Assembly (NCBI RefSeq): GCF_000315625.1 | Contig: NW_005434395.1 | Coordinates: 1-33,915 of the forward strand | DNA: 33,915 nucleotides | Reading direction: 5' to 3' | From: Guillardia theta CCMP2712 | Lineage: Eukaryota; Protista; Cryptophyta | In this document: piece after piece, positions 2,403-33,316 of the stretch | Numbering within the stretch: position 1 is the stretch's first letter | How the letters are laid out: the number at the start of each line of letters is the position of its first letter | Made by a program: the position numbers and the translations under genes | The notes under the pieces: model-generated | Told to the model about the DNA's origin: nothing | The model's input: the letters and a program-made list of their open reading frames with translations, nothing else | Databases searched by the model: none

Positions 2403-2903
2403 ATGGAAGGCCTCGTGTATCCTTCTTTCGACAAGGTGAGCATGAAGGAGATCGCACCAACGATTCAATGAGTCTGCAGGTCTGGAGCAACAGGAGGACG
2501 CATTCGTCCAACAGGAGGCTACTCAATGTCGCCTACGCCGACAACTCTCGAACCTTGTCGATGCGAACGACCTACTCGTCTGGTAGCCGCTCATCCTGTC
2601 GGCATAGCTGACCGTATGCTAGCTCCCGTCATGCTGGGCGATCGCAGCTCGAGGCCGGCAGCTCGGAAAGTGCCCTTGGAGTTTCATGACGCCAAGATGC
2701 GAAAGCGATGGATGCCCAACCCCCCGCGACCCGCGACAGTAGAAGCAGGTCAGCAGCAGAGCTTGACGCTGACAACTTGACAGGCCATGGCGGCGATGCG
2801 ATCGGATGAGAGAGAAGAGCAGGAGGTGTTGGGAGTGCTCAATCACAGCCTGTTGCGGCAGCGCGGCTCGTCTGTAACCTCCATGTCCCGTACCAGTGAC
2901 TAG
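2403..2903 (+). CDS. Small spliced hypothetical protein (about 4 exons)
   Basis: ATG at 2403 (MEGLVYPSFDK). GT-AG introns at 2436-2479 and about 2583-2622 keep the frame open. The last junction is ambiguous. No recognisable domain. Confidence 0.4.
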
Positions 2904-3160
2904 AATAGCTGCAAGGCGGCAGCTGCTGACTTGTTGAAGCAGCAGGAGGAATACGAAGCAAGTCAGCCTTCCAGCCCTCTTCTCCTTCCGTTCGCTCTAA
3001 GAACATCTTTTCTGCTTCTTGGTCATCAGAGCATCATTCGCCGGCACGCAGCAAGCTAGTGGCTAAAGGACTGTTCCTCTCGCCTGCTCTGACTGCTACT
3101 CATGACCTGATGAAGTCAGTCATAAGACAGCCATGATGAGAACGGGAGTGATTGCGAGCT

Positions 3161-3255
<95 letters not shown>

Positions 3256-3291
3256 ATGATGGAGATGATGATGATGATGATGATGATGATG
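3161..3291. repeat. (TGA)n microsatellite
   Basis: Directly visible; it explains the poly-M/H/S/I ORFs. Confidence 0.97.
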
Positions 3292-3375
3292 CATGCATGC
3301 ATTGCCTTGTCCTCATTATTGCTCTTCATGCTCTCTCGTTTTTCATTCTCTAACAAGCTTCTTTCTAGTGTCGGC

Positions 3376-10000: not shown

Positions 10001-11509
10001 TCTCGCTTCTCTTCCACTCCTCCTCCTGCCCTCTCGTCGCCTCCTGGAGCTCCTTCATCTCCTCGTGGCTTCGCTTTGCCTCCTCCACCTCACGCCTCAT
10101 CTCCTCCAGGTTCTGCTCGGCTGCCACCAGCATCTCCGACTTGTCGCGCAGCCGCGTCAGCATCTCGTTCATCGAGCTCGTCAGCTCCTTGTTCAGCTTC
10201 CTCGCCTCCCCCAGCGCCGCGTAGAGCTGGTTGACCTCCGCCCTCAGCGCCTCCTCTTCGCTCCCTCCTGCTTGCGCGACCTTCCAGCCTGAGTCCGCAG
10301 AGCATCAAAGAAAAAACACCAGGAGTAGGAGGAGGAGTAGGAGGAGAAGTAGGAGGTAGAGGAGGTAGAGGATAGCACCTGGCGGAGTCTTACTGGAGCC
10401 AACCGAGAAGCTCCTGTCGAAACTAGTCGACTGTTGTTTGATCTCTCCCCTTTCAGCCCTCACTGCCGCAAGATCCTCCTCTTCCTCTCTCCTCCCTTTA
10501 TCCTCTTCCTCTCTCCTTCGTTTATCCTCCTCCTCTCTCCTTCGTTTATCCTCCTCCTCCCTCCTTCGTTTATCCTCCTCTCCCCTCCTTCGTTTATCCT
10601 CCTCCTCCCTCCTCCTCCTCCTTTGCTCTTCTTCCTCGTCCCTTCGCTTCTTTTCCTCCCTCATTCTGTCTTGTTCCAGTTCCTCTCTCCTCTCTTCGTC
10701 AGCCTTTCTCTCAGCTTCTCGCTTCTCCTCATGCCTCCTCCGCTCTTCCCAGCTCTCCTCTTTCGTCCTGTCCGCCCCGTGAGGAGGAGAGCTTGTCTCC
10801 TCTCGCTCCGTCAGCAACTTAGGGGAGGCGCGAGGCGAGAGGTTTGTGCTGGGGTAGACTGAAGTTGAGTTCCCTTCTTCTGAGGAGAGAGACCTCGACC
10901 GCATGCCTCTTCTCCATCCCTCTCCTCTCCTCCCGTGCTCCTGCTCCTCCTCCTCACTCTCCATTTGCAGGTCAGGAATCGTGACAAAGTCTCGCTCCTC
11001 CCTCCTCTCCCTCCTCCTCCATGATCGCTCCATCGACATCTCAGCGACGCTCGAGCTGTCGAAGTCAGAGGTCTCGCTGAACACGTCCGCACTGTAGAGG
11101 TCTGCCAGATAGTCACAAGCAGAGCATGACTGAAGATGCTGAGCAGGGAGGGGAGGGGAGGGGAGCAGAGGAGGAGGTCAGGAAGGAGAGTGAGGTAGCA
11201 GGAGACCGGGCACGTAATCGTCAGTTTCGTAGATGCCTGCCAACAAGTTAGAGAGGCTGGAGGAGCAGGAGGAGGGGCATGACTTGTCTTGCTCTCAGAG
11301 AAGGCGGAGCTTGCTACCTTTCGACTCGCCTGATACTCTTCAGACTCTCTCGTGACTTCGAGGCATCGGACCTGCGGAAAGTCAAGGAAGGGCAAGCGAG
11401 TGAGGGAGAGATGTAGATCAAGGATGACGATGACGATGACGATGACGATGATAACAATGATGATGATGATGATGATGAAGAAGAAGAAGAAGAAGATGAT
11501 GATGATGGA

Positions 11510-11557
<48 letters not shown>

Positions 11558-11572
11558 AATGATGATGATGGA

Positions 11573-11612
<40 letters not shown>

Positions 11613-18789: not shown

Positions 18790-19407
<618 letters not shown>

Positions 19408-21899: not shown

Positions 21900-23510
21900 T
21901 TACTTGTTCCTCTCAGCCTGAACCATGGTGGAGGCGATGAGGTCGGGAGAGAACATTCCCGTGCTTCTGCGGAGCATGGGGTAGCTCGAGTTGGCCTCGA
22001 GAGTCTCAATGACGTTGGGGTACATGGACTGAATCATCGCCATCTTCTCTTCCATAGCAGTGAACCTCTGCTTCTCGAGGGACCAGAAGTCAGCCAACGC
22101 CTGCTGCTGCTGCTGAGAGTGGCGCAGCTCTTCTCTCAACCGCTTCACCTCCTCGTCCGTTGAGTCGTGGCCGTTGGTCATGCTCTGCGGCAAGTTGCCT
22201 TCCATCCCTCGCTTCTGAAGTTCAGCCAACTTCGCCTCGGCTTTTTCTTTGGCGATTTGCATCTTGAGGATATCTTGCGTCAGCTCTTCTCTCAGGGCTC
22301 GCAACTCCCTCCCCGAGTCTCTTCGCTGCGCGTCCAGGGCTACTGAGAGATGGTTCCGCATCTTGTCGAGAGCCTCGTGCATCATCGCCCTCTCCTGCTT
22401 GATGCGGGCATCTACTGGACCCTCCTGCTTCACAGCCGAGCTCAGCAGGCGAATTTGCGACTCCATCTGCAAGAGTTTCAGACGCTCCATCTCGAGCTCT
22501 CTGCGCAGCTGATTGCTCTCCCTCAAGCTGTCGGTCAAGCTGTCGGAGCTCATAGCCAACCTCTCCCTCATCTCCTCGTGGGCCGACGCGAGGGACTGCG
22601 CCCTTTCTCGCAGCATCGCACACTCATGCAGGAGACCTTCATTTTCTTTCTTCGACTGCTCAAGCGCCAAGGTCAGGTCGTCGTTCTTCCTTTCTTCGTG
22701 TTCGAGTCTACTCCTCAACGAAGACAGCGCTGCCTCCATGTGCGAATACTGCTCTCCCCTCCCTTCGGGTGTGGGAGATTTACGGTCTGGGGTCGTACTC
22801 TCTGAAGCAGGCAAAGACAACTCCTGGATGGTCTCTAGCCCGAACCCCCCGAGGGCCAACGATGAAGGGTTGCCTGCTCCGGGACCGAGGACGCTGATCT
22901 CGCTGAACTTCAACTTGAGCTCCTCCTTCTCCTTGGCGACATGCTCCAGCGCCTCCCTTGTGCTCTCTACCTCCTCCTCCAAGTGCCGGCACGTGCCGCG
23001 GACTTGAATATTCTCCAGTGCTAGCTGGTTGATTCTGTCTTGAAGCTGCTCCACGATGCTCCTGTCGTTGGGATCCTTCACGTAGGCGTTCAACGCTGCT
23101 CGCATCTGCAGCTCGCTCTCCACCGATTCAGCCCGGCTCTGCTCCACCTGCTTGAGCTTCTCCTCGAGATTCAACACCTCCTCTCTCCGTGCTGCTAGCG
23201 CGTTGCTCGCCTTTGATAGAGCGCTCTCAATCTCCTCTACTTTTATCTGCTCCGCATCTGCTCCGCCAGCGCACACGGCCAGCCTGCCCTCGAGCTCTGC
23301 ATTCCTGGCTCTAATCTCTTCATTCTCAAAGAGCGCAGCACGCAGAGCCTTGGTGGTAGCGTCTATGATGCCTGTCAAGTCAGATGACGATCGCTTGTCC
23401 TTGAAGTCGTGCAGCTTGTCCATTGTGTTCGACCACGAGGGGGGCACAGGGTTGGGAGACTCTTCTGAGACGTCTTGCAGATCTAGTTGGTCGTGTGGAG
23501 GATGCGGCAT
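21900..23510 (-). CDS. Intronless coiled-coil protein (about 535 aa; start probably MPHPPHD, ORF extends to 23696)
   Basis: A 598-codon open frame with extended heptad-rich E/K/L/Q segments. Confidence 0.8.
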   Translation of the reverse strand: MPHPPHDQLDLQDVSEESPNPVPPSWSNTMDKLHDFKDKRSSSDLTGIIDATTKALRAALFENEEIRARNAELEGRLAVCAGGADAEQIKVEEIESALSKASNALAARREEVLNLEEKLKQVEQSRAESVESELQMRAALNAYVKDPNDRSIVEQLQDRINQLALENIQVRGTCRHLEEEVESTREALEHVAKEKEELKLKFSEISVLGPGAGNPSSLALGGFGLETIQELSLPASESTTPDRKSPTPEGRGEQYSHMEAALSSLRSRLEHEERKNDDLTLALEQSKKENEGLLHECAMLRERAQSLASAHEEMRERLAMSSDSLTDSLRESNQLRRELEMERLKLLQMESQIRLLSSAVKQEGPVDARIKQERAMMHEALDKMRNHLSVALDAQRRDSGRELRALREELTQDILKMQIAKEKAEAKLAELQKRGMEGNLPQSMTNGHDSTDEEVKRLREELRHSQQQQQALADFWSLEKQRFTAMEEKMAMIQSMYPNVIETLEANSSYPMLRRSTGMFSPDLIASTMVQAERNK

Positions 23511-24343
23511 GGCCGGAGGTGGACGCGATGAGGAAGAAGGAAGCAACGAGGAGGAGGAGGAGGAGGAGGAGGAGGCGAGCTGTTTGTTGTTGTGATCGAA
23601 CAACGAGTGACAAGTCGCTGGAAGCATTGAAACGGCGAACTTGACCTTTTTTTTTGGATGGGGGTATGTGGGTCCGGAGGTACCGGTCATATGCACCTAA
23701 ATTTACTGATGAAGGGGTGGGTACTGGTTGGGGAATGGAGTACAGGGTACTTGATGTACTCGAATGGGGTATTCATCAGTATTCTCAGGGGGGTACTCAT
23801 AACACCGGTGTCTTTTCCCAAGAAAATATGCTAAATGTCCAGGTGGGTCCTTATTGAATTGCAGGGGTACGATAAAATCGGCATGGGTGGGGGTACTTTG
23901 ATACCTATTTAGTACCCCTTATTTTCATATTAGTTGGTAGGGGTCTTTATGAAAATTGATGGTAAGAGCTCCCGATTAAAGGTGACGGGTGGGTGGGGTG
24001 GGTTTCAGCGGCTCTTCGCTGGGATGGCGAACTACGGGGCAGTAGGTGAGTGAGAATGGCGGGAGAGAAGGAGAAGAGAGGGAGAAGAAGTCAAGTCATG
24101 CCATGTTTGAACATAGTTCCATCCCTTCTTGCTCTCTTCTAATGCCTCCTCCTCCTTGTTTCGTTTGTTTCATCCCCTTACCCGTGATGTGCAAAAACTG
24201 TACGTTCGACGCTGCAGACAAATGAGCACATTGCTGCTGTTATGTTCGACATCTGATCTTGATTCTCTCACAAGAAGCTTCACATTCCTCAAATCCTTCC
24301 TGAGATAGGCGTAGATATTTGTCTGTGTCTCTCCTGCCGTAGC

Positions 24344-27300
24344 TTGTTTCTTGAGGATCGTGGGGTACAAGTCGACTGCCGACGCCTTCCAAGTCTTGTA
24401 CCTCTGACGGAGCTCGCAGGGTCCATCCAGGGACTCAGCCCGTTCAAGAAGACCCGCAAGTTGGCCGCATGGCAGGTCCTGGGCGTTGCAGCCCTTGCAC
24501 TGTGTGTGCTCGCGTTGGCAGTTGTTTCCACGCATGGCACGCGCAAGTCAGTCCTGCTGTCTAGGAGCAAGGCGCAGTATGCTGCTGCAAGGATGGGATT
24601 CATCCCCCGAGCAAGGTTCGTGATGACCAAGCAGCAGTTCCGAAAGATCCTACTGGCAGAGGAAGAGAGGTCCGTGATCCAGATCTGCGGTTCGAGTGTC
24701 TGCAAGGCCAAGGAGGGCTGTAACCAGGAGTCCTTCAAGAAGTGTGTCGCGATGAAGCCAGAGGACAGGAAGAAGTTTGTGGCCCAGCAGCTGCCCAAGC
24801 TCAACCTCATGGAGGGCCCACTTGCTGACCTCCCCGAAGAGGCAAACCTCGAGATGGGCGAGCTCGGAAACCTCCCGGAGGACACCACTGCTGCTCAGTG
24901 TGGGACTGGCGCATGCACTGCAGAGGGATGCGATGACAGCACCTTCTTCGCTTGCTTCAAGCAGCTGGAGCAGAGAAAGATGGAATTCGTGAAATCAAAC
25001 CCCCAGCTCGCCAAGCACATGGCTGAGTTTGTGAAGAAAGAGGCAGCTCAGAAGGCTCTCGTTAAGGGCCAGCAGGCTTCGGCGTCTAAGGTCTCCTTTA
25101 CTCATGCTACGATGCGAATGTGACCAGTGTGGTCAGAACGTGGAGAAGATGCCTTTCAGCAGCGATCAGGAGCCCCCTGTCATGGGAACACACTACATGA
25201 CCGCCAATTGGGTCAACCAGCAGGTCGTTGGCTGTCGCTTTGGCAAGCTCGCTGATGGTTCGTAGGCCAAGGGAAAGCAGTCAAGATTGAGATCCGCGTT
25301 CCGCATGTCAAAGTTGAACCTCCACGAGGGTCCGTTGGCAGACCTTCCGGATGAGGTAGTAGGCTCTCTGTTTGTGCTCCGATTGATTCCAGTGCTTTAG
25401 CCGAATGTGATGATCGGAGAGCTGGGAAGTTTGCCTGGTGGGTTGACAGATTCGGAATTGGATCCTTGTCTTCATCCCTTCCTTCCTCCATCCCTTCCTT
25501 CACGCACCTCGTTGATGCCGTTGATGCAGATGAACCGAACATCATGATCGGGGAGCTCGGTGGCTTGCCAGATGAGGTACAAGTTGGTGTTTTACAAACA
25601 AGGAGAAAGAGAGATGAAATTCTAATGCGATTGATACAGCCGAACCTGATGGAGGGAGAGCTCAGCACCCTTCCGGATGAGGTAAGAGACGAGGGAGAGG
25701 AAGGAGGAGATAGGGGAAAGCATACAAGAACAGGGGAAGGAGGGGACTAGAGAAGGGAGAGGGATCGTATGGGACATAAATCTAACGGCATTGGGCAGCC
25801 GAACCTGATGGAGGGAGAGCTCAGCACCCTTCCTGACGAGGTAGGGGAGGAAGCGAAGGAGAAGATGCAGAGGAGAGGAGAGGAGAGGAGGGAGAGGAGG
25901 AGAGGAGGAGACGGAGAGGAGCTGACGGCACTGGACAGCCGAACCTGATGGAGGGAGAGCTCAGCACTCTGCCTGACGAGGTAGGGGAGAAGAAGAGATG
26001 GAGAGGAAGAGGAGAGTGATGGCGTTTGCCAGCCGAACTTGATGATTGGCGAGCTTGGAACGCTTCCTGACGAGGTAGGGGAGGAGGAAGTGACTGAAAG
26101 GAGGCTGCCATCTGATGCTGCGTGACAGCCGAACCTGATGATCGGAGAGCTTGGAACGCTTCCCGACGAGGTGAGCGAGCAAGGAAGAGAAGGGGGGAGG
26201 AGGATGCTTATACGCCGGTCAGCCGAACTTGATGATCGGAGAGCTTGGAACGCTTCCGGATGAGGTAGGGGAGGAAGAGGAGACGGAGAGGAGGAGAGGA
26301 AGAGAAGAGACAAGCTGACGGGACTGGACAGCCGAACCTGATGGAGGGAGAGCTCAGCACCCTTCCGGACGAGGTAAGAGACGAGGGAGAGAGGGCTAGA
26401 GAAGGGAGAGGGAACGTAACGGACAGAAGCCTGACTGGAATGGGCAGCCGAACTTGATGATCGGAGAGCTTGGAACGCTTCCGGATGAGGTAGGGGAGGA
26501 GGCAGAGGAGGGGGGAGGAGGATGCTTATACGCTGGTCAGCCGAACCTGATGGAGGGAGAGCTCAGCACTCTGCCTGACGAGGTAGGGGAGAAAGAGGGA
26601 AATGGGAGGAGGGAGAGGAGGAGAGGAAGAGAAGATAGAAGCTGATGGGGCTGGACAGCCGAACCTGATGATCGGAGAGCTTGGAACCCTTCCAGACGAG
26701 GTAAGAGAGGAGATGGAGAGGAAGAGGAGAGTGACGGCATTTGCCAGCCGAACTTGATGATCGGAGAGCTTGGAACGCTTCCTGACGAGGTAGGGGAGGA
26801 GGCAGAGAGGGCTAGAGCATGAGGAGAGCGATTGTATGGGACAGAAGTCTGACGGGAATGGGCAGCCGAACTTGATGATCGGAGAGCTTGGAACGCTCCC
26901 CGACGAGGTGAGCAAGCAAGGAAGAGAAGGGAGGAGGAGGATGCTTATACGCTGGTCAGCCGAACTTGATGATCGGAGAGCTTGGAACGCTTCCGGATGA
27001 GGTAGGNNNNNNNNNNNNNNNNNNNNNNNNNNNNNNNNNNNNNNNNNNNNNNNNNNNNNNNNNNNNNNNNNNNNNNNNNNNNNNNNNNNNNNNNNNNNNN
27101 NNNNNNNNNNNNNNNNNNNNNNNNNNNNNNNNNNNNNNNNNNNNNNNNNNNNNNNNNNNNNNNNNNNNNNNNNNNNNNNNNNNNNNNNNNNNNNNNNNNN
27201 NNNNNNNNNNNNNNNNNNNNNNNNNNNNNNNNNNNNNNNNNNNNNNNNNNNNNNNNNNNNNNNNNNNNNNNNNNNNNNNNNNNNNNNNNNNNNNNNNNNN

Positions 27301-28322
27301 NNNNNNNNNNNNNNNNNNNNNNNNNNNNNNNNNNNNNNNNNNNNNNNNNNNNNNNNNNNNNNNNNNNNNNNNNNNNNNNNNNNNNNNNNNNNNNNNNNNN
27401 NNNNNNNNNNNNNNNNNNNNNNNNNNNNNNNNNNNNNNNNNNNNNNNNNNNNNNNNNNNNNNNNNNNNNNNNNNNNNNNNNNNNNNNNNNNNNNNNNNNN
27501 NNNCGTCGCCTCCCTCCCTCCCTCCCCTCCCCTCCCCTCCCCTCCCCTCCCCTCCCCTCCCCTCCCCTCCCCTCCCCTCCCCTCCCCTCCCCTCCCCTCC
27601 CCTCCCCTCCCCTCCCCTCCCCTCCCTCCCCCCTCCGCTCACTTTGGCCCTGCAGCCGAACCTCGACACCGGCATCCTCGGATCTCTCAAGGCCAAGAGG
27701 AAGGTTCAGCTTCTCAGGCAGGCGATGGGCCGCCGGGTCTCCAGCCCGTGGCAGATGCTCAGGAGGATGGTGACGCGTAAGAGCGCCGTGGTGGCTTGCG
27801 GGGTCACGAGCTGCGGGAGGAAGTCCGGGTGTGACAACAAGTCCTTCGCCATGTGCATGAGGCGAAGCGCCGGACAGCCACAGGCCCTCAAGGCTCGCAA
27901 GGTCCTGGGGCTGCGACGCTCCGTCCTGAAGCTCCTCAAGCAGAAGAAGGAGAAGTCCGCCGTCCTCCTCCTCGCTTCGCAAGAGGTTGCCCCTTCCCAC
28001 CTTCGGTCTACCGATCTATCTTCCTGCCTCTCTTTTCCAGTCTCCTCCTCCTCCTCCTCCTCCTCCTCCTCCTCCTCCTTCTCTTGCTGCTGAGCTTACT
28101 TGATGTCTCAGTGCTCGGCGAGAACCTGCAGCAAGTCGGGATGCGCCAGCAACGCCTTCAAGCAGTGCGTGCAGGGACGCTTGAGTATCTCTGCCAAGGC
28201 TGCTCGCATCCTCGCCCGCAAGGCTCATCCCAAGGCAGCAGCCGCCGCCAGCCGCTCGCAGCCGGTACGGGAAGAGGATGGAGAGGAGGGTCTGACCCCA
28301 GCTGCAGGCCAGCAAGAAGTAA
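24344..28322 (+). CDS. Type II membrane/secreted protein with four Cys-rich modules and a micro-exon-encoded 14-aa tandem repeat; start not resolved
   Basis: TM segment LAAWQVLGVAALALCVLALAVVS. Large exon to 25090, exons 25137-25223 and 25266-25355, micro-exons 25401-27001, gap, exons 27656-27984 and 28112-28264, and a last exon ASKK* (TAA 28320-28322). All visible junctions are GT-AG and in frame. Confidence 0.82.
25640..27001 (+). repeat. Array of 13 visible 42-nt micro-exons PNLM(E/I)GEL(S/G)TLPDE separated by 47-117 nt introns
   Basis: Exon starts: 25640, 25799, 25939, 26033, 26129, 26223, 26332, 26448, 26541, 26659, 26748, 26866, 26960. Each is preceded by CAG and followed by GTA/GTG. 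Confidence 0.95.
27516..27632. repeat. (CCCCT)n microsatellite at gap edge, intronic
   Basis: Directly visible. Confidence 0.95.
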
Positions 28323-28522
28323 CTGAGCTAGCGACGAGCTGGAGGATGAGAGAGGAGGGGGGAGGATCTTCTCTAACGCGCACGCGATCGATCCCACAAG
28401 ATGTACTTGTACCACATTACTGAACAAGTTGCCTCCTACCCCTTCCGGTCTGCCCACCCCCCTTCTTACTCCGTCCCCTCCCATTACCTCACTCTCCAGC
28501 TCCGTGTCCCAGCTCGGTCGCT

Positions 28523-29929
28523 TCAAGTTCGAGCTGGCGGAGTGTTCTTCCCTAGCTCATCCCCAGCAGAGGCTCGAACGGCCACCGGGCTGACCGTGAA
28601 GACGGCGCGAGGTCGCTCGTAATAGGAGATGTCGCAGGGAAAGCCGTTGTGCAGGAGTTGACCTGGGGAGACCTGCACGCACTTGAAGCAGCAGTCGACG
28701 AGCTCGGACTGCAGCTGGGGATGGCGGGGGAGGGGGAGCAGGGCGTCAGCTGGGAGCGAGCAGGTCCTCATGTACGGGGAGAGGGCCGAGATGACGTCAC
28801 CGGGCTTGAGCTTCCCCTCAGGCATGTTGTAGACGCTAACGGCGAAGAAGGAGCCGCTCCTGTCGGAGACGACCAGGTGGATGGGCCGCTCGGTGTTGGG
28901 GATCGCGAAGATCATGACGTGGAGGACCCTCCCGAGGTTCCATCCCTCGGCCATGTCCGCCAGCACGCAGTCCACGTACTCAGTGCTGCCGACGGGGAGA
29001 GGCTCGGCAGGGGGCGGGAGGAAGAGGAGCATGGACTGGATCTTCTCAGCCTTGAGGTTGCACTGCCGCGCGATCATGGCGTGCATCTCGTTCACCAGCC
29101 TCGCCACCTTGACGATCTGCTCAGACGCGTTGAGCTCGGGGTCGAGGGCGTGGGCGCGGAGGAGCTCGAGGACGGCGTTGTGGTAGTCCTCCAGGTAGCG
29201 GTAGACAGTGGCCTTGTTGAAGTGAAGGTCGGGGTCGCGGCTCTGACCGTCCTGATCTGACTTGTGATAGGCCTTGAGGGCTCGGAACAGATCCTCCCGG
29301 TCGAGGGACAGCGAGAAGAAGTAAGACATGTACGCATTCCCCAGGTTCGTCCACGAGTGCGAGTCAGACATGTCGCGGCTGACAAGCTCCTTGGCCAGCC
29401 TCAGGCTCTCCTCTGGGTTCTTGCCCTTCACCCGGTGCGCCATCGAGAGCTTCCGCATCGCCCCCTTCACGTCCTCCACGTTGGAGCAGTGCAGCAGCGT
29501 GTTCTGCCAGCAGTCGTGCGCGAGCTGTACCTCCCCCTTCTTCCACAAGCACGTTCCCAGCTGGTTCCAGGCGTCTCCCAGCGACGGGTCCAGCTTGACG
29601 GCCCTCGACAGGTCCTGCTCGGCTTCAGCTGAGTACTCCTCCCCAGCGTCGAAGGCCTTCCCCCGGATGTAGGATAGCGTCGCCCTCTCCTTCTTGGACC
29701 TGCCAGTAGCAGGGAACTGATCGAGGAGGGACAGCAGAGCCTGTCGCTCCGCCATCAGTCGCTCCGATCGCTCATGCAGGTCCAGCACCACCAGCCCCTC
29801 GTGCAGCTCGTAGAGCGAGCGCAGGCGCTGCAGGGCCATCTCGAACAGCTCGTTGGTATCCATGCTCCTCTGCTCTCCACTCTCACCAGCCTCGTCCAAC
29901 ATGCCGGGGCCGTCTTGTCCCCCTGCCAT
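28523..29929 (-). CDS. TTC5: Tetratricopeptide repeat protein 5 homolog (TPRs + C-terminal OB-fold), intronless
   Basis: 468-aa ORF with LSRAVKLDPSLGDAWNQLGTCLWKKG, SWTNLGNAYMSYFF, ALKAY, DPDLHFNKATVYRYLEDY...LDP and FAVSVYN...GDVI, all characteristic of TTC5/STRAP. Confidence 0.9.
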   Translation of the reverse strand: MAGGQDGPGMLDEAGESGEQRSMDTNELFEMALQRLRSLYELHEGLVVLDLHERSERLMAERQALLSLLDQFPATGRSKKERATLSYIRGKAFDAGEEYSAEAEQDLSRAVKLDPSLGDAWNQLGTCLWKKGEVQLAHDCWQNTLLHCSNVEDVKGAMRKLSMAHRVKGKNPEESLRLAKELVSRDMSDSHSWTNLGNAYMSYFFSLSLDREDLFRALKAYHKSDQDGQSRDPDLHFNKATVYRYLEDYHNAVLELLRAHALDPELNASEQIVKVARLVNEMHAMIARQCNLKAEKIQSMLLFLPPPAEPLPVGSTEYVDCVLADMAEGWNLGRVLHVMIFAIPNTERPIHLVVSDRSGSFFAVSVYNMPEGKLKPGDVISALSPYMRTCSLPADALLPLPRHPQLQSELVDCCFKCVQVSPGQLLHNGFPCDISYYERPRAVFTVSPVAVRASAGDELGKNTPPART

Positions 29930-32522: not shown

Positions 32523-33316
32523 TTACCAACAATGAAGTACATCAGTGATGACGTCACGATCTTTGTCATGCTGCTCAAGTATTTGTCCAATGGACCGAAT
32601 CATGGAAGACAGACGAGGGACTTGAGTGTCTACCCCAGCCGGCTGATGGTTCTCATGGAGCTGCTGACAGCCTCTCCGAGATTCTTCAACTTCTTTGTCC
32701 ACGTCTTCTTTTCCCGCAAGATTGACCTTCGACTTGGTCACTGACCGTTTGAAAGTGGGTCAAATTGCTGCGGTACGCATGACAAGCCAACTCGATGGCA
32801 GCGATTGTTGATCGTTATCAATGCAGCCAAACAACATCCGTGAACGTTCTGTACGCAACAGCAGTTGAATGTGGTAGATGCAACAACAGCAGTTGAATGT
32901 GGTAGATGCAACAACAGCAGTTGAATGTGGTAGATGCAACAACAGCAGTTGAATGTGGTAGATGCAACAACAGCAGTTGAATGTGGTAGATGCAACAACA
33001 GCAGTTGAATGTGGTAGATGCAACAACAGCAGTTGAATGTGGTAGATGTAACAACAGCAGTTGAATGTGGTAGATGCAACAACAGCAGTTGAATGTGGTA
33101 GATGCAACAACAGCAGTTGAATGTGGTAGATGCAACAACAGCAGTTGAATGTGGTAGATGCAACAACAGCAGCAGGTACACATCGGATATTCCCCCAAGT
33201 TCAACGATCGTTGCATCCAGCCGGTTCCAGTACCGTAGGGAATCAGTACCGCCGGCTGCGGCAGTACTACATATAAAAGTTTTAAAGGATTTTGTACCTG
33301 GCAGATTGCCGTCCAT
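32523..33316 (-). CDS. Possible small spliced hypothetical gene
   Basis: Coding-like blocks (GGTDSLRYWNRLDATIVELGGISD; MIRSIGQILEQHDKDRDVITDVLHCW*) lie either side of the minisatellite. I could not fix a unique splice path. Confidence 0.25.
32856..33171. repeat. 28-bp minisatellite GCAACAACAGCAGTTGAATGTGGTAGAT x about 11
   Basis: Head-to-tail, nearly perfect (one C>T variant near 33049), no spacers. Confidence 0.96.

Follow-up and report, generated by a model that had tools for sequence, protein, structure and literature searches.

How does a gene come to be divided into a long run of almost identical, very small exons, and are the spacers between them removed as introns at all? These questions are raised by contig NW_005434395.1, analysed here as one stretch of 33,915 nucleotides (hereafter the window), which carries an array of 42-nt units, each coding for a 14-residue repeat, at 25640-27001. 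We put the probability at roughly 0.8 that this array belongs to one expressed gene on the plus strand (about 24024-28423) of a cryptophyte-type alga, that the gene encodes a membrane-anchored protein, and that its micro-exons multiplied by duplication of exons together with their introns. Units were collected as CCGAAY-initiated 42-mers from 24000-29000, which yielded 13 of them, starting at 25640, 25799, 25939, 26033, 26129, 26223, 26332, 26448, 26541, 26659, 26748, 26866 and 26960. All 13 are exactly 42 nt long, begin and end in phase 0, and have cag directly on their 5' side and gt directly on their 3' side. The mean spacing of the starts is 110 bp ((26960-25640)/12), and Tandem Repeats Finder reported the region as arrays with a period of 94-207. 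Only two peptide forms occur among the 13 units, PNLMEGELSTLPDE (type E, four acidic residues) and PNLMIGELGTLPDE (type I, three acidic residues), and along the array they follow one another as E E E I I I E I E I I I I. A preliminary description, made from the sequence, had already given the 13 symmetric units, their cag and gt borders, the order of types and the 110-bp period, and every detail that can be checked proved exact. It had also held that differences within a type are synonymous; four sites vary among the E units and seven among the I units, and indeed 11 of 11 are synonymous. Random single-base changes in the units would be synonymous in about 22% of cases, which gives a chance of about 0.22^11 for all 11, so that the unit pattern is far from what chance would produce. 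The first 29 nt are identical in all E units and the first 22 nt in several I units. A micro-exon is defined as a spliced internal exon of 51 nt or less (PMC4317164), and the 42-nt units, with exon-exon joins in contigs, fall under this definition.

Regarding the spacers, the RNA evidence consists of 31-mer contigs assembled from two sequencing runs, X1 (organism label A) and X2 (organism label B), and aligned to 23900-27006. In these contigs every skipped part is bounded by GT..AG. The introns removed, after correction for offset, are 24046-24419, 25091-25136, 25224-25265, 25356-25400, 25438-25529 and 25577-25639, the last of which leads into the array. All units lie on the plus strand. The first three are of type E: unit 1 (25640-25681) is attached to the preceding exon by the joint 25576/25640 in X2, unit 2 (25799-25840) is given by unit extraction and contigs, and unit 3 (25939-25980) is joined to unit 4 at a loose contig end of X2 (26031). 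Units 4 (26033-26074), 5 (26129-26170) and 6 (26223-26264) are of type I, the first two being followed by the adjacent unit across the joints 26074/26129 and 26170/26223, and unit 6 resting on extraction and contigs. Unit 7 (26332-26373) is of type E; unit 8 (26448-26489), found by extraction, is of type I; and unit 9 (26541-26582), again type E, is joined to its neighbour at 26582/26659 in both X1 and X2. Loose contig ends at 26264, 26373 and 26582 continue directly into the start of another unit, for unit 7 that of the next one. Unit 10 (26659-26700) is a hybrid by extraction, contigs and unit comparison, namely a type I unit with E-like flanking codons. The remaining three are of type I: unit 11 (26748-26789, by extraction), unit 12 (26866-26907, inside a duplicated block described below) and unit 13 (26960-27001, by extraction and block comparison), whose 3' side reads gtagg before the assembly gap begins.

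When the exons are joined from the ATG at 24024 to the end of unit 13, they form a single open frame of 500 codons. Of the 13 introns from 25577-25639 to 26908-26959, 10 would cause a frameshift or introduce a stop if retained. Because the contigs are spliced at the borders, one frame runs through the joined exons, and most introns would be disruptive if kept, the exon model of the preliminary description holds, with the spacers removed at the predicted borders. The gene is highly expressed. In X1 the mean word depth is about 3600 for the main contig and 4 for a contig containing intron 1, and contigs of a further run, X12, cross introns at depth 2-6, as expected of DNA or unspliced RNA.

An array of this kind might serve as a generator of diversity in the manner of the micro-exon genes (MEGs) of schistosomes, with cassette exons used in varying subsets and many lengths and E/I compositions arising from one gene. 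It has the right form, since all 13 exons are of equal length and phase 0/0 and any subset can be skipped in frame, just as the preliminary description stated. One X2 contig moreover joins an E unit to another E unit, with one mismatch, in an adjacency not found in the visible array, although units hidden in the gap or a strain difference would explain this join as well. Apparent long skips were also seen (e.g. 25574 to 26539 and 25838 to 26539), but the shorter side of every one is only 22-26 nt. We rejected them as evidence of exon skipping, because these short arms lie within stretches shared by several units, where a join of adjacent units fits equally well; they are points at which the assembler stopped at a branch. 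Short introns are recognised intron by intron, which favours intron retention over exon skipping and thus speaks against a splicing choice of this type. The short array introns, too, would be recognised intron by intron, as their size suggests, and the tiny exons would then be no obstacle. Homologues with intron-free arrays, furthermore, make the same kind of protein without any choice in splicing. Taken together we regard a MEG-like diversity generator as unlikely.

How the array grew can be read from its introns and from the blocks they share with the exons. The array introns measure 47-117 nt, are 69-88% purine and have no polypyrimidine tract, compared to 35-46% purine in the other introns of the gene and 18% in its predicted last intron. 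Their 5' end reads GTAGGGGA, GTAAGAGA or GTGAGC and their 3' end CAG. Near the 3' end, 8 of the 13 introns from 25577-25639 to 26908-26959 carry a YTRAY motif, whose A lies 13 nt from the intron end in seven of them and 14 nt in one (25577-25639); the spacing of about 13 nt suggests that the motif may act in splicing as a branch-like element. By intron comparison they fall into family a (25682-25798, 26374-26447, 26790-26865), family b (25841-25938, 26265-26331, 26583-26658), family c (25981-26032, 26701-26747) and family e (26171-26222, 26490-26540, 26908-26959), with 26075-26128 as a singleton, all on the plus strand; families c and e have GTGAY or TTATAC in place of YTRAY. Introns of one family are 80-94% identical, and those of different families about 40-70%. 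Some introns are mosaics: 26490-26540 and 26790-26865 share their 5' part, while their tails are those of families e and a, respectively. Exons and introns were copied together. The longest such copy is an ungapped exon-intron-exon block of 144 nt, in which 26126-26269 and 26863-27006 are 96.5% identical, and further pairs are 25636-25699 with 26328-26391 (98.4% identity) and 25891-25983 with 26285-26376 (90%). These co-duplicated blocks, along with the intron families, bear out the earlier suggestion of growth by duplication of exon plus intron.

A comparison with an orthologue of the gene gives further insight into its variation. The large exon has one close protein, P0001, whose metagenome contig (L001, 2409 nt) aligns to window positions 24077-26464 with 91% identity, the same exons and the same array spacing. 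Exons are 95.5% identical without any indel, and introns 86.7% identical with 53 indel columns. Overall 32 codon differences are synonymous and 19 non-synonymous. In the seven array exons shared with L001 the ratio is 15 synonymous to 3 non-synonymous, and 3 of these 3 are switches between E and I or between S and G. Together with the 11 of 11 synonymous sites inside the array, this supports the protein-level constraint that the preliminary description had proposed. Unit 3 is of type E in the window and type I in L001, unit 2 of L001 is an E...G hybrid, and the introns beside unit 3 are the most diverged between the two sequences, which points to tracts of conversion or recombination between units. 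The flanks of the array look older than the array itself: the unit in exon 4 is followed by an intron at the same border, the intron between exons 5 and 6 is displaced, and the flanking introns are not purine-rich.

From these observations a stepwise origin can be proposed. It would have started with an intron at a repeat border, and this border intron would have been copied along with its exon as the coding tandem repeat underwent unequal crossing-over. Exon types and intron halves may later have been shuffled by gene conversion and recombination, with selection restricting the peptide to the two forms allowed, E...S and I...G.

The introns could alternatively have arrived one by one, if an intron-free 42-nt array had been entered over and over, always at the same site, by a mobile element that generates introns. 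Intron-free arrays do exist among the homologues. The metagenome scaffolds L005 and L007 both encode 14-residue units at exactly 42-nt spacing without introns, L007 with at least 27 contiguous units (1295-2390). The array introns are also alike, and their composition sets them apart from the gene's remaining introns. Repeated insertion would nevertheless not explain why exon variants travel with the neighbouring intron variants in exon-intron-exon blocks, nor why intron halves are mosaic, as recombination would leave them, and a search of the 34-kb window outside the array with the array introns matched only simple sequence of the (GGAGG)n type. Because of these three observations we favour unequal crossing-over of exon-plus-intron cassettes and consider repeated intron insertion very improbable. 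An assembly artefact or a non-coding repeat (a satellite in an intron or untranslated region, or a collapsed assembly), which the adjoining gap and simple repeats might suggest, can practically be discounted given that spliced contigs join the units, the independent metagenome contig L001 shares the layout, change is tolerated only where it is synonymous, and transcript-derived homologues carry the same peptide repeat.

Regarding the homologues in general, introns are found at other positions of the repeat as well. Homologue L008 contains, at 2598-3300, two 39-nt exons about 0.5 kb apart, each coding for one 13-residue unit in phase 1 (cag/GC GAG CTC ... TTG GAA G/gt), and L002 has a 39-nt phase-0 exon coding for YPIDTNLVGELGQ, the splice sites of both being read from sequence only. 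The repeat is thus interrupted at three positions: in the window gene by a phase-0 intron behind LPDE, in L008 by a phase-1 intron that splits the NLEG Gly codon, and in L002 by a phase-0 intron behind GELGQ. Proteins P0037 and P0005 differ solely by a clean 28-residue, two-unit indel, which shows that repeat number changes at the DNA level. It is conceivable, if rather doubtful, that introns entered the coding repeat at three or more positions in different lineages and were multiplied each time with their exon by unequal crossing-over, with arrays left intron-free in sister lineages; if this applied genome-wide, minisatellite-style expansion would be a general process, still at work, by which cryptophytes multiply introns and gain micro-exons, and it could be followed directly between strains. 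The L007 array has an in-frame TAG at about 1679, where most other units have Glu or Lys, which could be an error, a polymorphism or the mark of a pseudogene, and the repeat region of L008 contains an N gap. In the database, the gene calls of P0007, P0041, P0042 and P0026 cross splice donors into introns and end in Cys/Val-rich tails from (TG)n, from which it follows that automated calls truncate the family at the first intron of the repeat region. Scans of JGI metagenome contigs with the spliced-junction pattern and with the general unit pattern gave no matches, and no DNA contig could be traced for P0003, a transcriptome protein from Rhodomonas sp. CCMP768.

The array is interrupted downstream by an N gap (27007-27503) with intron sequence at both edges. 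On the left, the gap follows 27006, 5 nt (gtagg) into the intron behind the phase-0 end of unit 13; on the right, 152 nt of intron precede a phase-0 exon start at 27656. This 3' part of the last array intron (27504-27655, plus strand) carries (CCCTC)26, as sequence reading and repeat finding show, and ends in ctgcag, with the microsatellite itself at 27512-27640, adjoining the gap. Since both edges are intronic the reading frame does not depend on the length of the gap, and as the gap may hold more units, 13 is a lower bound. Continuity of the gene across it is supported indirectly, by homology to P0003. The exon at 27656-27985 matches residues 524-586 of this protein (41% identity, E 2e-10), the exon from 28112 matches it from residue 587, exactly adjacent to 586, and P0003, too, has such a repeat array, flanked by the same Cys modules. 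Of the words sampled from 27641-28430, a fraction of 0.67-0.69 occurs in the RNA-like runs that contain the left part of the gene, approximately what is expected from the exons alone. A protein search with the exon after the gap, its length range widened by means of a gap-spanning reference, gave no match.

Outside the array the gene has the following structure, all on the plus strand. Exon 1 (24024-24045) starts at the ATG, covers 7 codons and one nucleotide of the next (MANYGAV G-) and is spliced at 24045/24420 with GT..AG in X1 and X2 contigs, with the frame checked. Intron 1 (24046-24419, 374 nt) is removed in X1 and X2, and kept in the X12 contigs and the depth-4 contig of X1. Exon 2 (24420-25090), supported by contigs and cryptophyte homologues, encodes the membrane anchor, Cys module 1, two intron-free repeat units and Cys module 2. 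It is followed across the joint 25090/25137 by exon 3 (25137-25223, 87 nt, phase 0/0), and across 25223/25266 by exon 4 (25266-25355, 90 nt), which by contigs and frame ends in the unit LNLHEGPLADLPDE before an intron at the unit border. Thus both related intron-free units that the preliminary description had noted in the large exon were found, and the unit in exon 4 adds a third. Exon 5 (25401-25437, 37 nt, phase 0 to 1) encodes PNVMIGELGSLP and the first base of an Asp codon, and exon 6 (25530-25576, 47 nt, phase 1 to 0) completes the Asp-Glu codons and continues with PNIMIGELGGLPDE, the joint 25437/25530 being present in X1 and X2 contigs. Together they amount to 84 nt (37+47), or 2 x 42 nt, and the intron they share is shifted by 5 nt into phase 1. 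The diverged units that had been reported to flank the array are present, but the one at 25401 is in fact a 37-nt exon: its Asp codon is split by the phase-1 intron, so that the peptide given, PNVMIGELGSLPDE, is correct only after splicing of the 37-nt and 47-nt exons, whose joint was found in the RNA contigs.

On the far side of the gap, the exon 27656-27985 is a 110-codon open frame, collinear with P0003, which contains the last degenerate unit (PNLDTGILGSL), a linker and Cys module 3. A pyrimidine-rich intron of 126 nt with gt..ag borders is predicted at 27986-28111, since the flanking exons match adjacent residues of P0003 (586/587), and the predicted last exon (28112-28423), placed from its frame and the comparison with P0003, would encode Cys module 4 and a basic tail, with the stop at 28421-28423 if no further intron intervenes. 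Coding length thus amounts to at least about 2000 nt (1500 before the gap plus 330 and 156-309 after it), and the 13 array exons with 546 nt make up about a quarter of it.

An exhaustive, profile-free search with exon 2 yielded 23 relatives, among them matches with E-values of 2.5e-85 and 1.5e-72. The named ones are all cryptophyte transcriptome proteins, from Rhodomonas sp. CCMP768 (P0003), Proteomonas sulcata and Hemiselmis tepida, and those without an organism name come from environmental contigs. Several members share the parts described in the following, although not every part is present in each member: a MAxYG(S/A)-hydrophobic N-terminus, one hydrophobic anchor, small 4-Cys modules, a variable number of 13- or 14-residue repeats (NLxxGELxxLPxE or NLEGxLxxYPxD) and, in the longest members, a Lys/Ala-rich tail. 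The 4-Cys modules stand on both sides of the repeat array, with two per side in P0003 and P0053, and in P0003 the E unit of the window, PNLMEGELSTLPDE, recurs unchanged ten times in a row. The spliced product of the window has the family features when set against P0003, P0053, P0025 and P0055. Its order is a MAxYG N-terminus, a hydrophobic anchor, two 4-Cys modules, the acidic 14-residue repeats, two further 4-Cys modules and a basic tail. The module (C-x4-C-x4/5-C-x7-C) occurs in four copies within 24680-28175, two on each side of the array, and is also present in named and environmental homologues. The N-terminal motif, which precedes the membrane anchor (24024-24160 in the window) and in several members reads MANYGAV, MAGYGTI, MAHYGAI, MANYGSL or MPSYGSI, resembles a YxxΦ sorting signal.

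Neither the protein nor its relatives have a Pfam family for any of their parts, a profile search found no relatives in PDB, and the ESM Atlas yielded no relative (best score 0.75). Two candidate assignments were set aside. Homologues with 13-residue repeats match the PCF11 RFEGP repeat weakly and periodically, which we take as an effect of repeat composition, and a leucine-rich-repeat-like reading of NLxxGxLxxLP does not fit, as the unit is too short and no solenoid appears in the model. The anchor probably spans the membrane once. The MAxYG N-terminus looks like a YxxΦ-like sorting signal in a short cytoplasmic tail with basic residues ahead of it, and in that case the Cys modules and acidic repeats would be placed outside the cytoplasm. 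The product, whose repeat region is unstructured according to the model prediction, would then serve as an extended acidic stalk or spacer that probably lies on the non-cytoplasmic side, with its length set by the number of units in the DNA, and the anchor and Cys modules make a location at the surface plausible.

Several points weigh against the reading of a single expressed gene with this array. The N gap is bridged by none of the reads or contigs obtained, and the run type of X1 and X2 is only guessed to be RNA; X16, the sole run on record as RNA with raw reads, contributed a single read. The longest contigs reach over about two array units, and the order and number of units in the mRNA, as well as their constitutive inclusion, lie beyond that reach. 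Two joins in X2 do not fit the visible sequence: in one, an E unit is joined to a diverged unit (ENLLEGYLAT) and at least 255 nt outside the visible sequence of the window, and in the other, the E-to-E join mentioned above, the first unit ends in ACTCTGCCTGACG. Units hidden in the gap could account for either join, as could a paralogue, a difference between strains, or skipping. As to the protein, topology and location are deduced from the amino acid sequence. In the AlphaFold2 model of P0003 the Cys modules form a helix-hairpin-helix with a pLDDT of about 70-79 and the repeat region has a pLDDT below 50 and no secondary structure, but the model was built from a 17-sequence alignment and low confidence is no proof of disorder.

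The neighbourhood of the gene contains two open frames on the minus strand. At 28523-29929 a frame of 468 aa with TPR repeats and a TTC5 OB-fold domain (PF16669, E 7e-10) is convergent on the 3' end of the repeat gene, and at 21900-23696 there is a frame of 598 aa, Glu/Leu-rich and coiled-coil-like, without a Pfam family. Large simple repeats elsewhere in the window are (TGA)44 at 3161-3291, (GAT)63 at 11423-11612, (CTCTG)84 at 18910-19325 and a 28-nt unit repeated 11.3 times with 99% identity at 32856-33172.

Arrays of homologous exon-plus-intron cassettes are known from a few animal genes, but 13 or more near-identical 42-nt exons in an alga are an unusually clean and young example. A comparison set exists with an orthologue carrying the same array, intron-free homologues and homologues with other intron positions. 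This makes it testable how introns multiply inside coding repeats and how short exons between purine-rich introns without a polypyrimidine tract are recognised. The locus also draws attention to a highly expressed cryptophyte membrane protein family without a name, which is prone to mis-annotation by gene callers.

Within the family, the intron-free relatives on L005 and L007 (P0037, P0010) share with the window gene the 14-residue NLxxGELxxLPxE repeat, the 42-nt spacing and the architecture of anchor and Cys modules; in contrast to the window gene, which has an intron after every unit, they have none between units. In animal structural genes, one repeat per exon is found in the 54-bp exons of fibrillar collagens and in the PEVK exons of titin. 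There as here, short symmetric exons each contribute one unit of an extended low-complexity segment, with tandem exon duplication, but sequences and lineages are unrelated and those arrays are old and diverged, whereas the blocks described here are near-identical and young. The analogy is a looser one.

In schistosome MEGs very small symmetric exons make up most of the coding region, alternative splicing produces a pool of protein variants, and the family is restricted to platyhelminths (PMC4350168); MEG introns are long, up to 5 kb (PMC4350168, PMC10526429). The analogy drawn in the preliminary description stands as far as exon symmetry is concerned, both having runs of very small symmetric exons that could in principle be skipped in frame. 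It fails for micro-exon share, intron length and family membership: here micro-exons are a minority of the coding sequence (546 of at least about 2000 nt), introns measure 47-117 nt, the exons are copies of one repeat, which MEG exons are not, and every named relative is a cryptophyte. The array is not a member of the MEG family.

In mechanism, the nearest precedent is offered by the spider silk genes Flag (Nephila) and MaSp2 (Argiope) with their iterated exon-intron organisation, in which homologous exons alternate with homologous introns in one repeat-protein gene, and an intron once inside the repeat can be propagated by unequal crossing-over (PMC1885213). The ensemble repeats of Flag measure about 440 aa each, with introns that are almost identical among themselves (PMC1885213). 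The array resembles these genes in that successive exons are copies of each other (13 units, two peptide forms) and in its signs of recombination or homogenisation, namely the 96.5% identical blocks, the mosaic introns, the E-to-I difference in unit 3 and the hybrid unit 2 of L001. It differs in that each exon is a single 14-residue unit of 42 nt, that introns are less conserved than exons and fall into four families with 80-94% identity within a family, short of the near-identity seen in Flag, and that the organism is an alga rather than an animal. Given the co-duplicated blocks and the mosaic introns, the explanation put forward for the silk genes fits here too.

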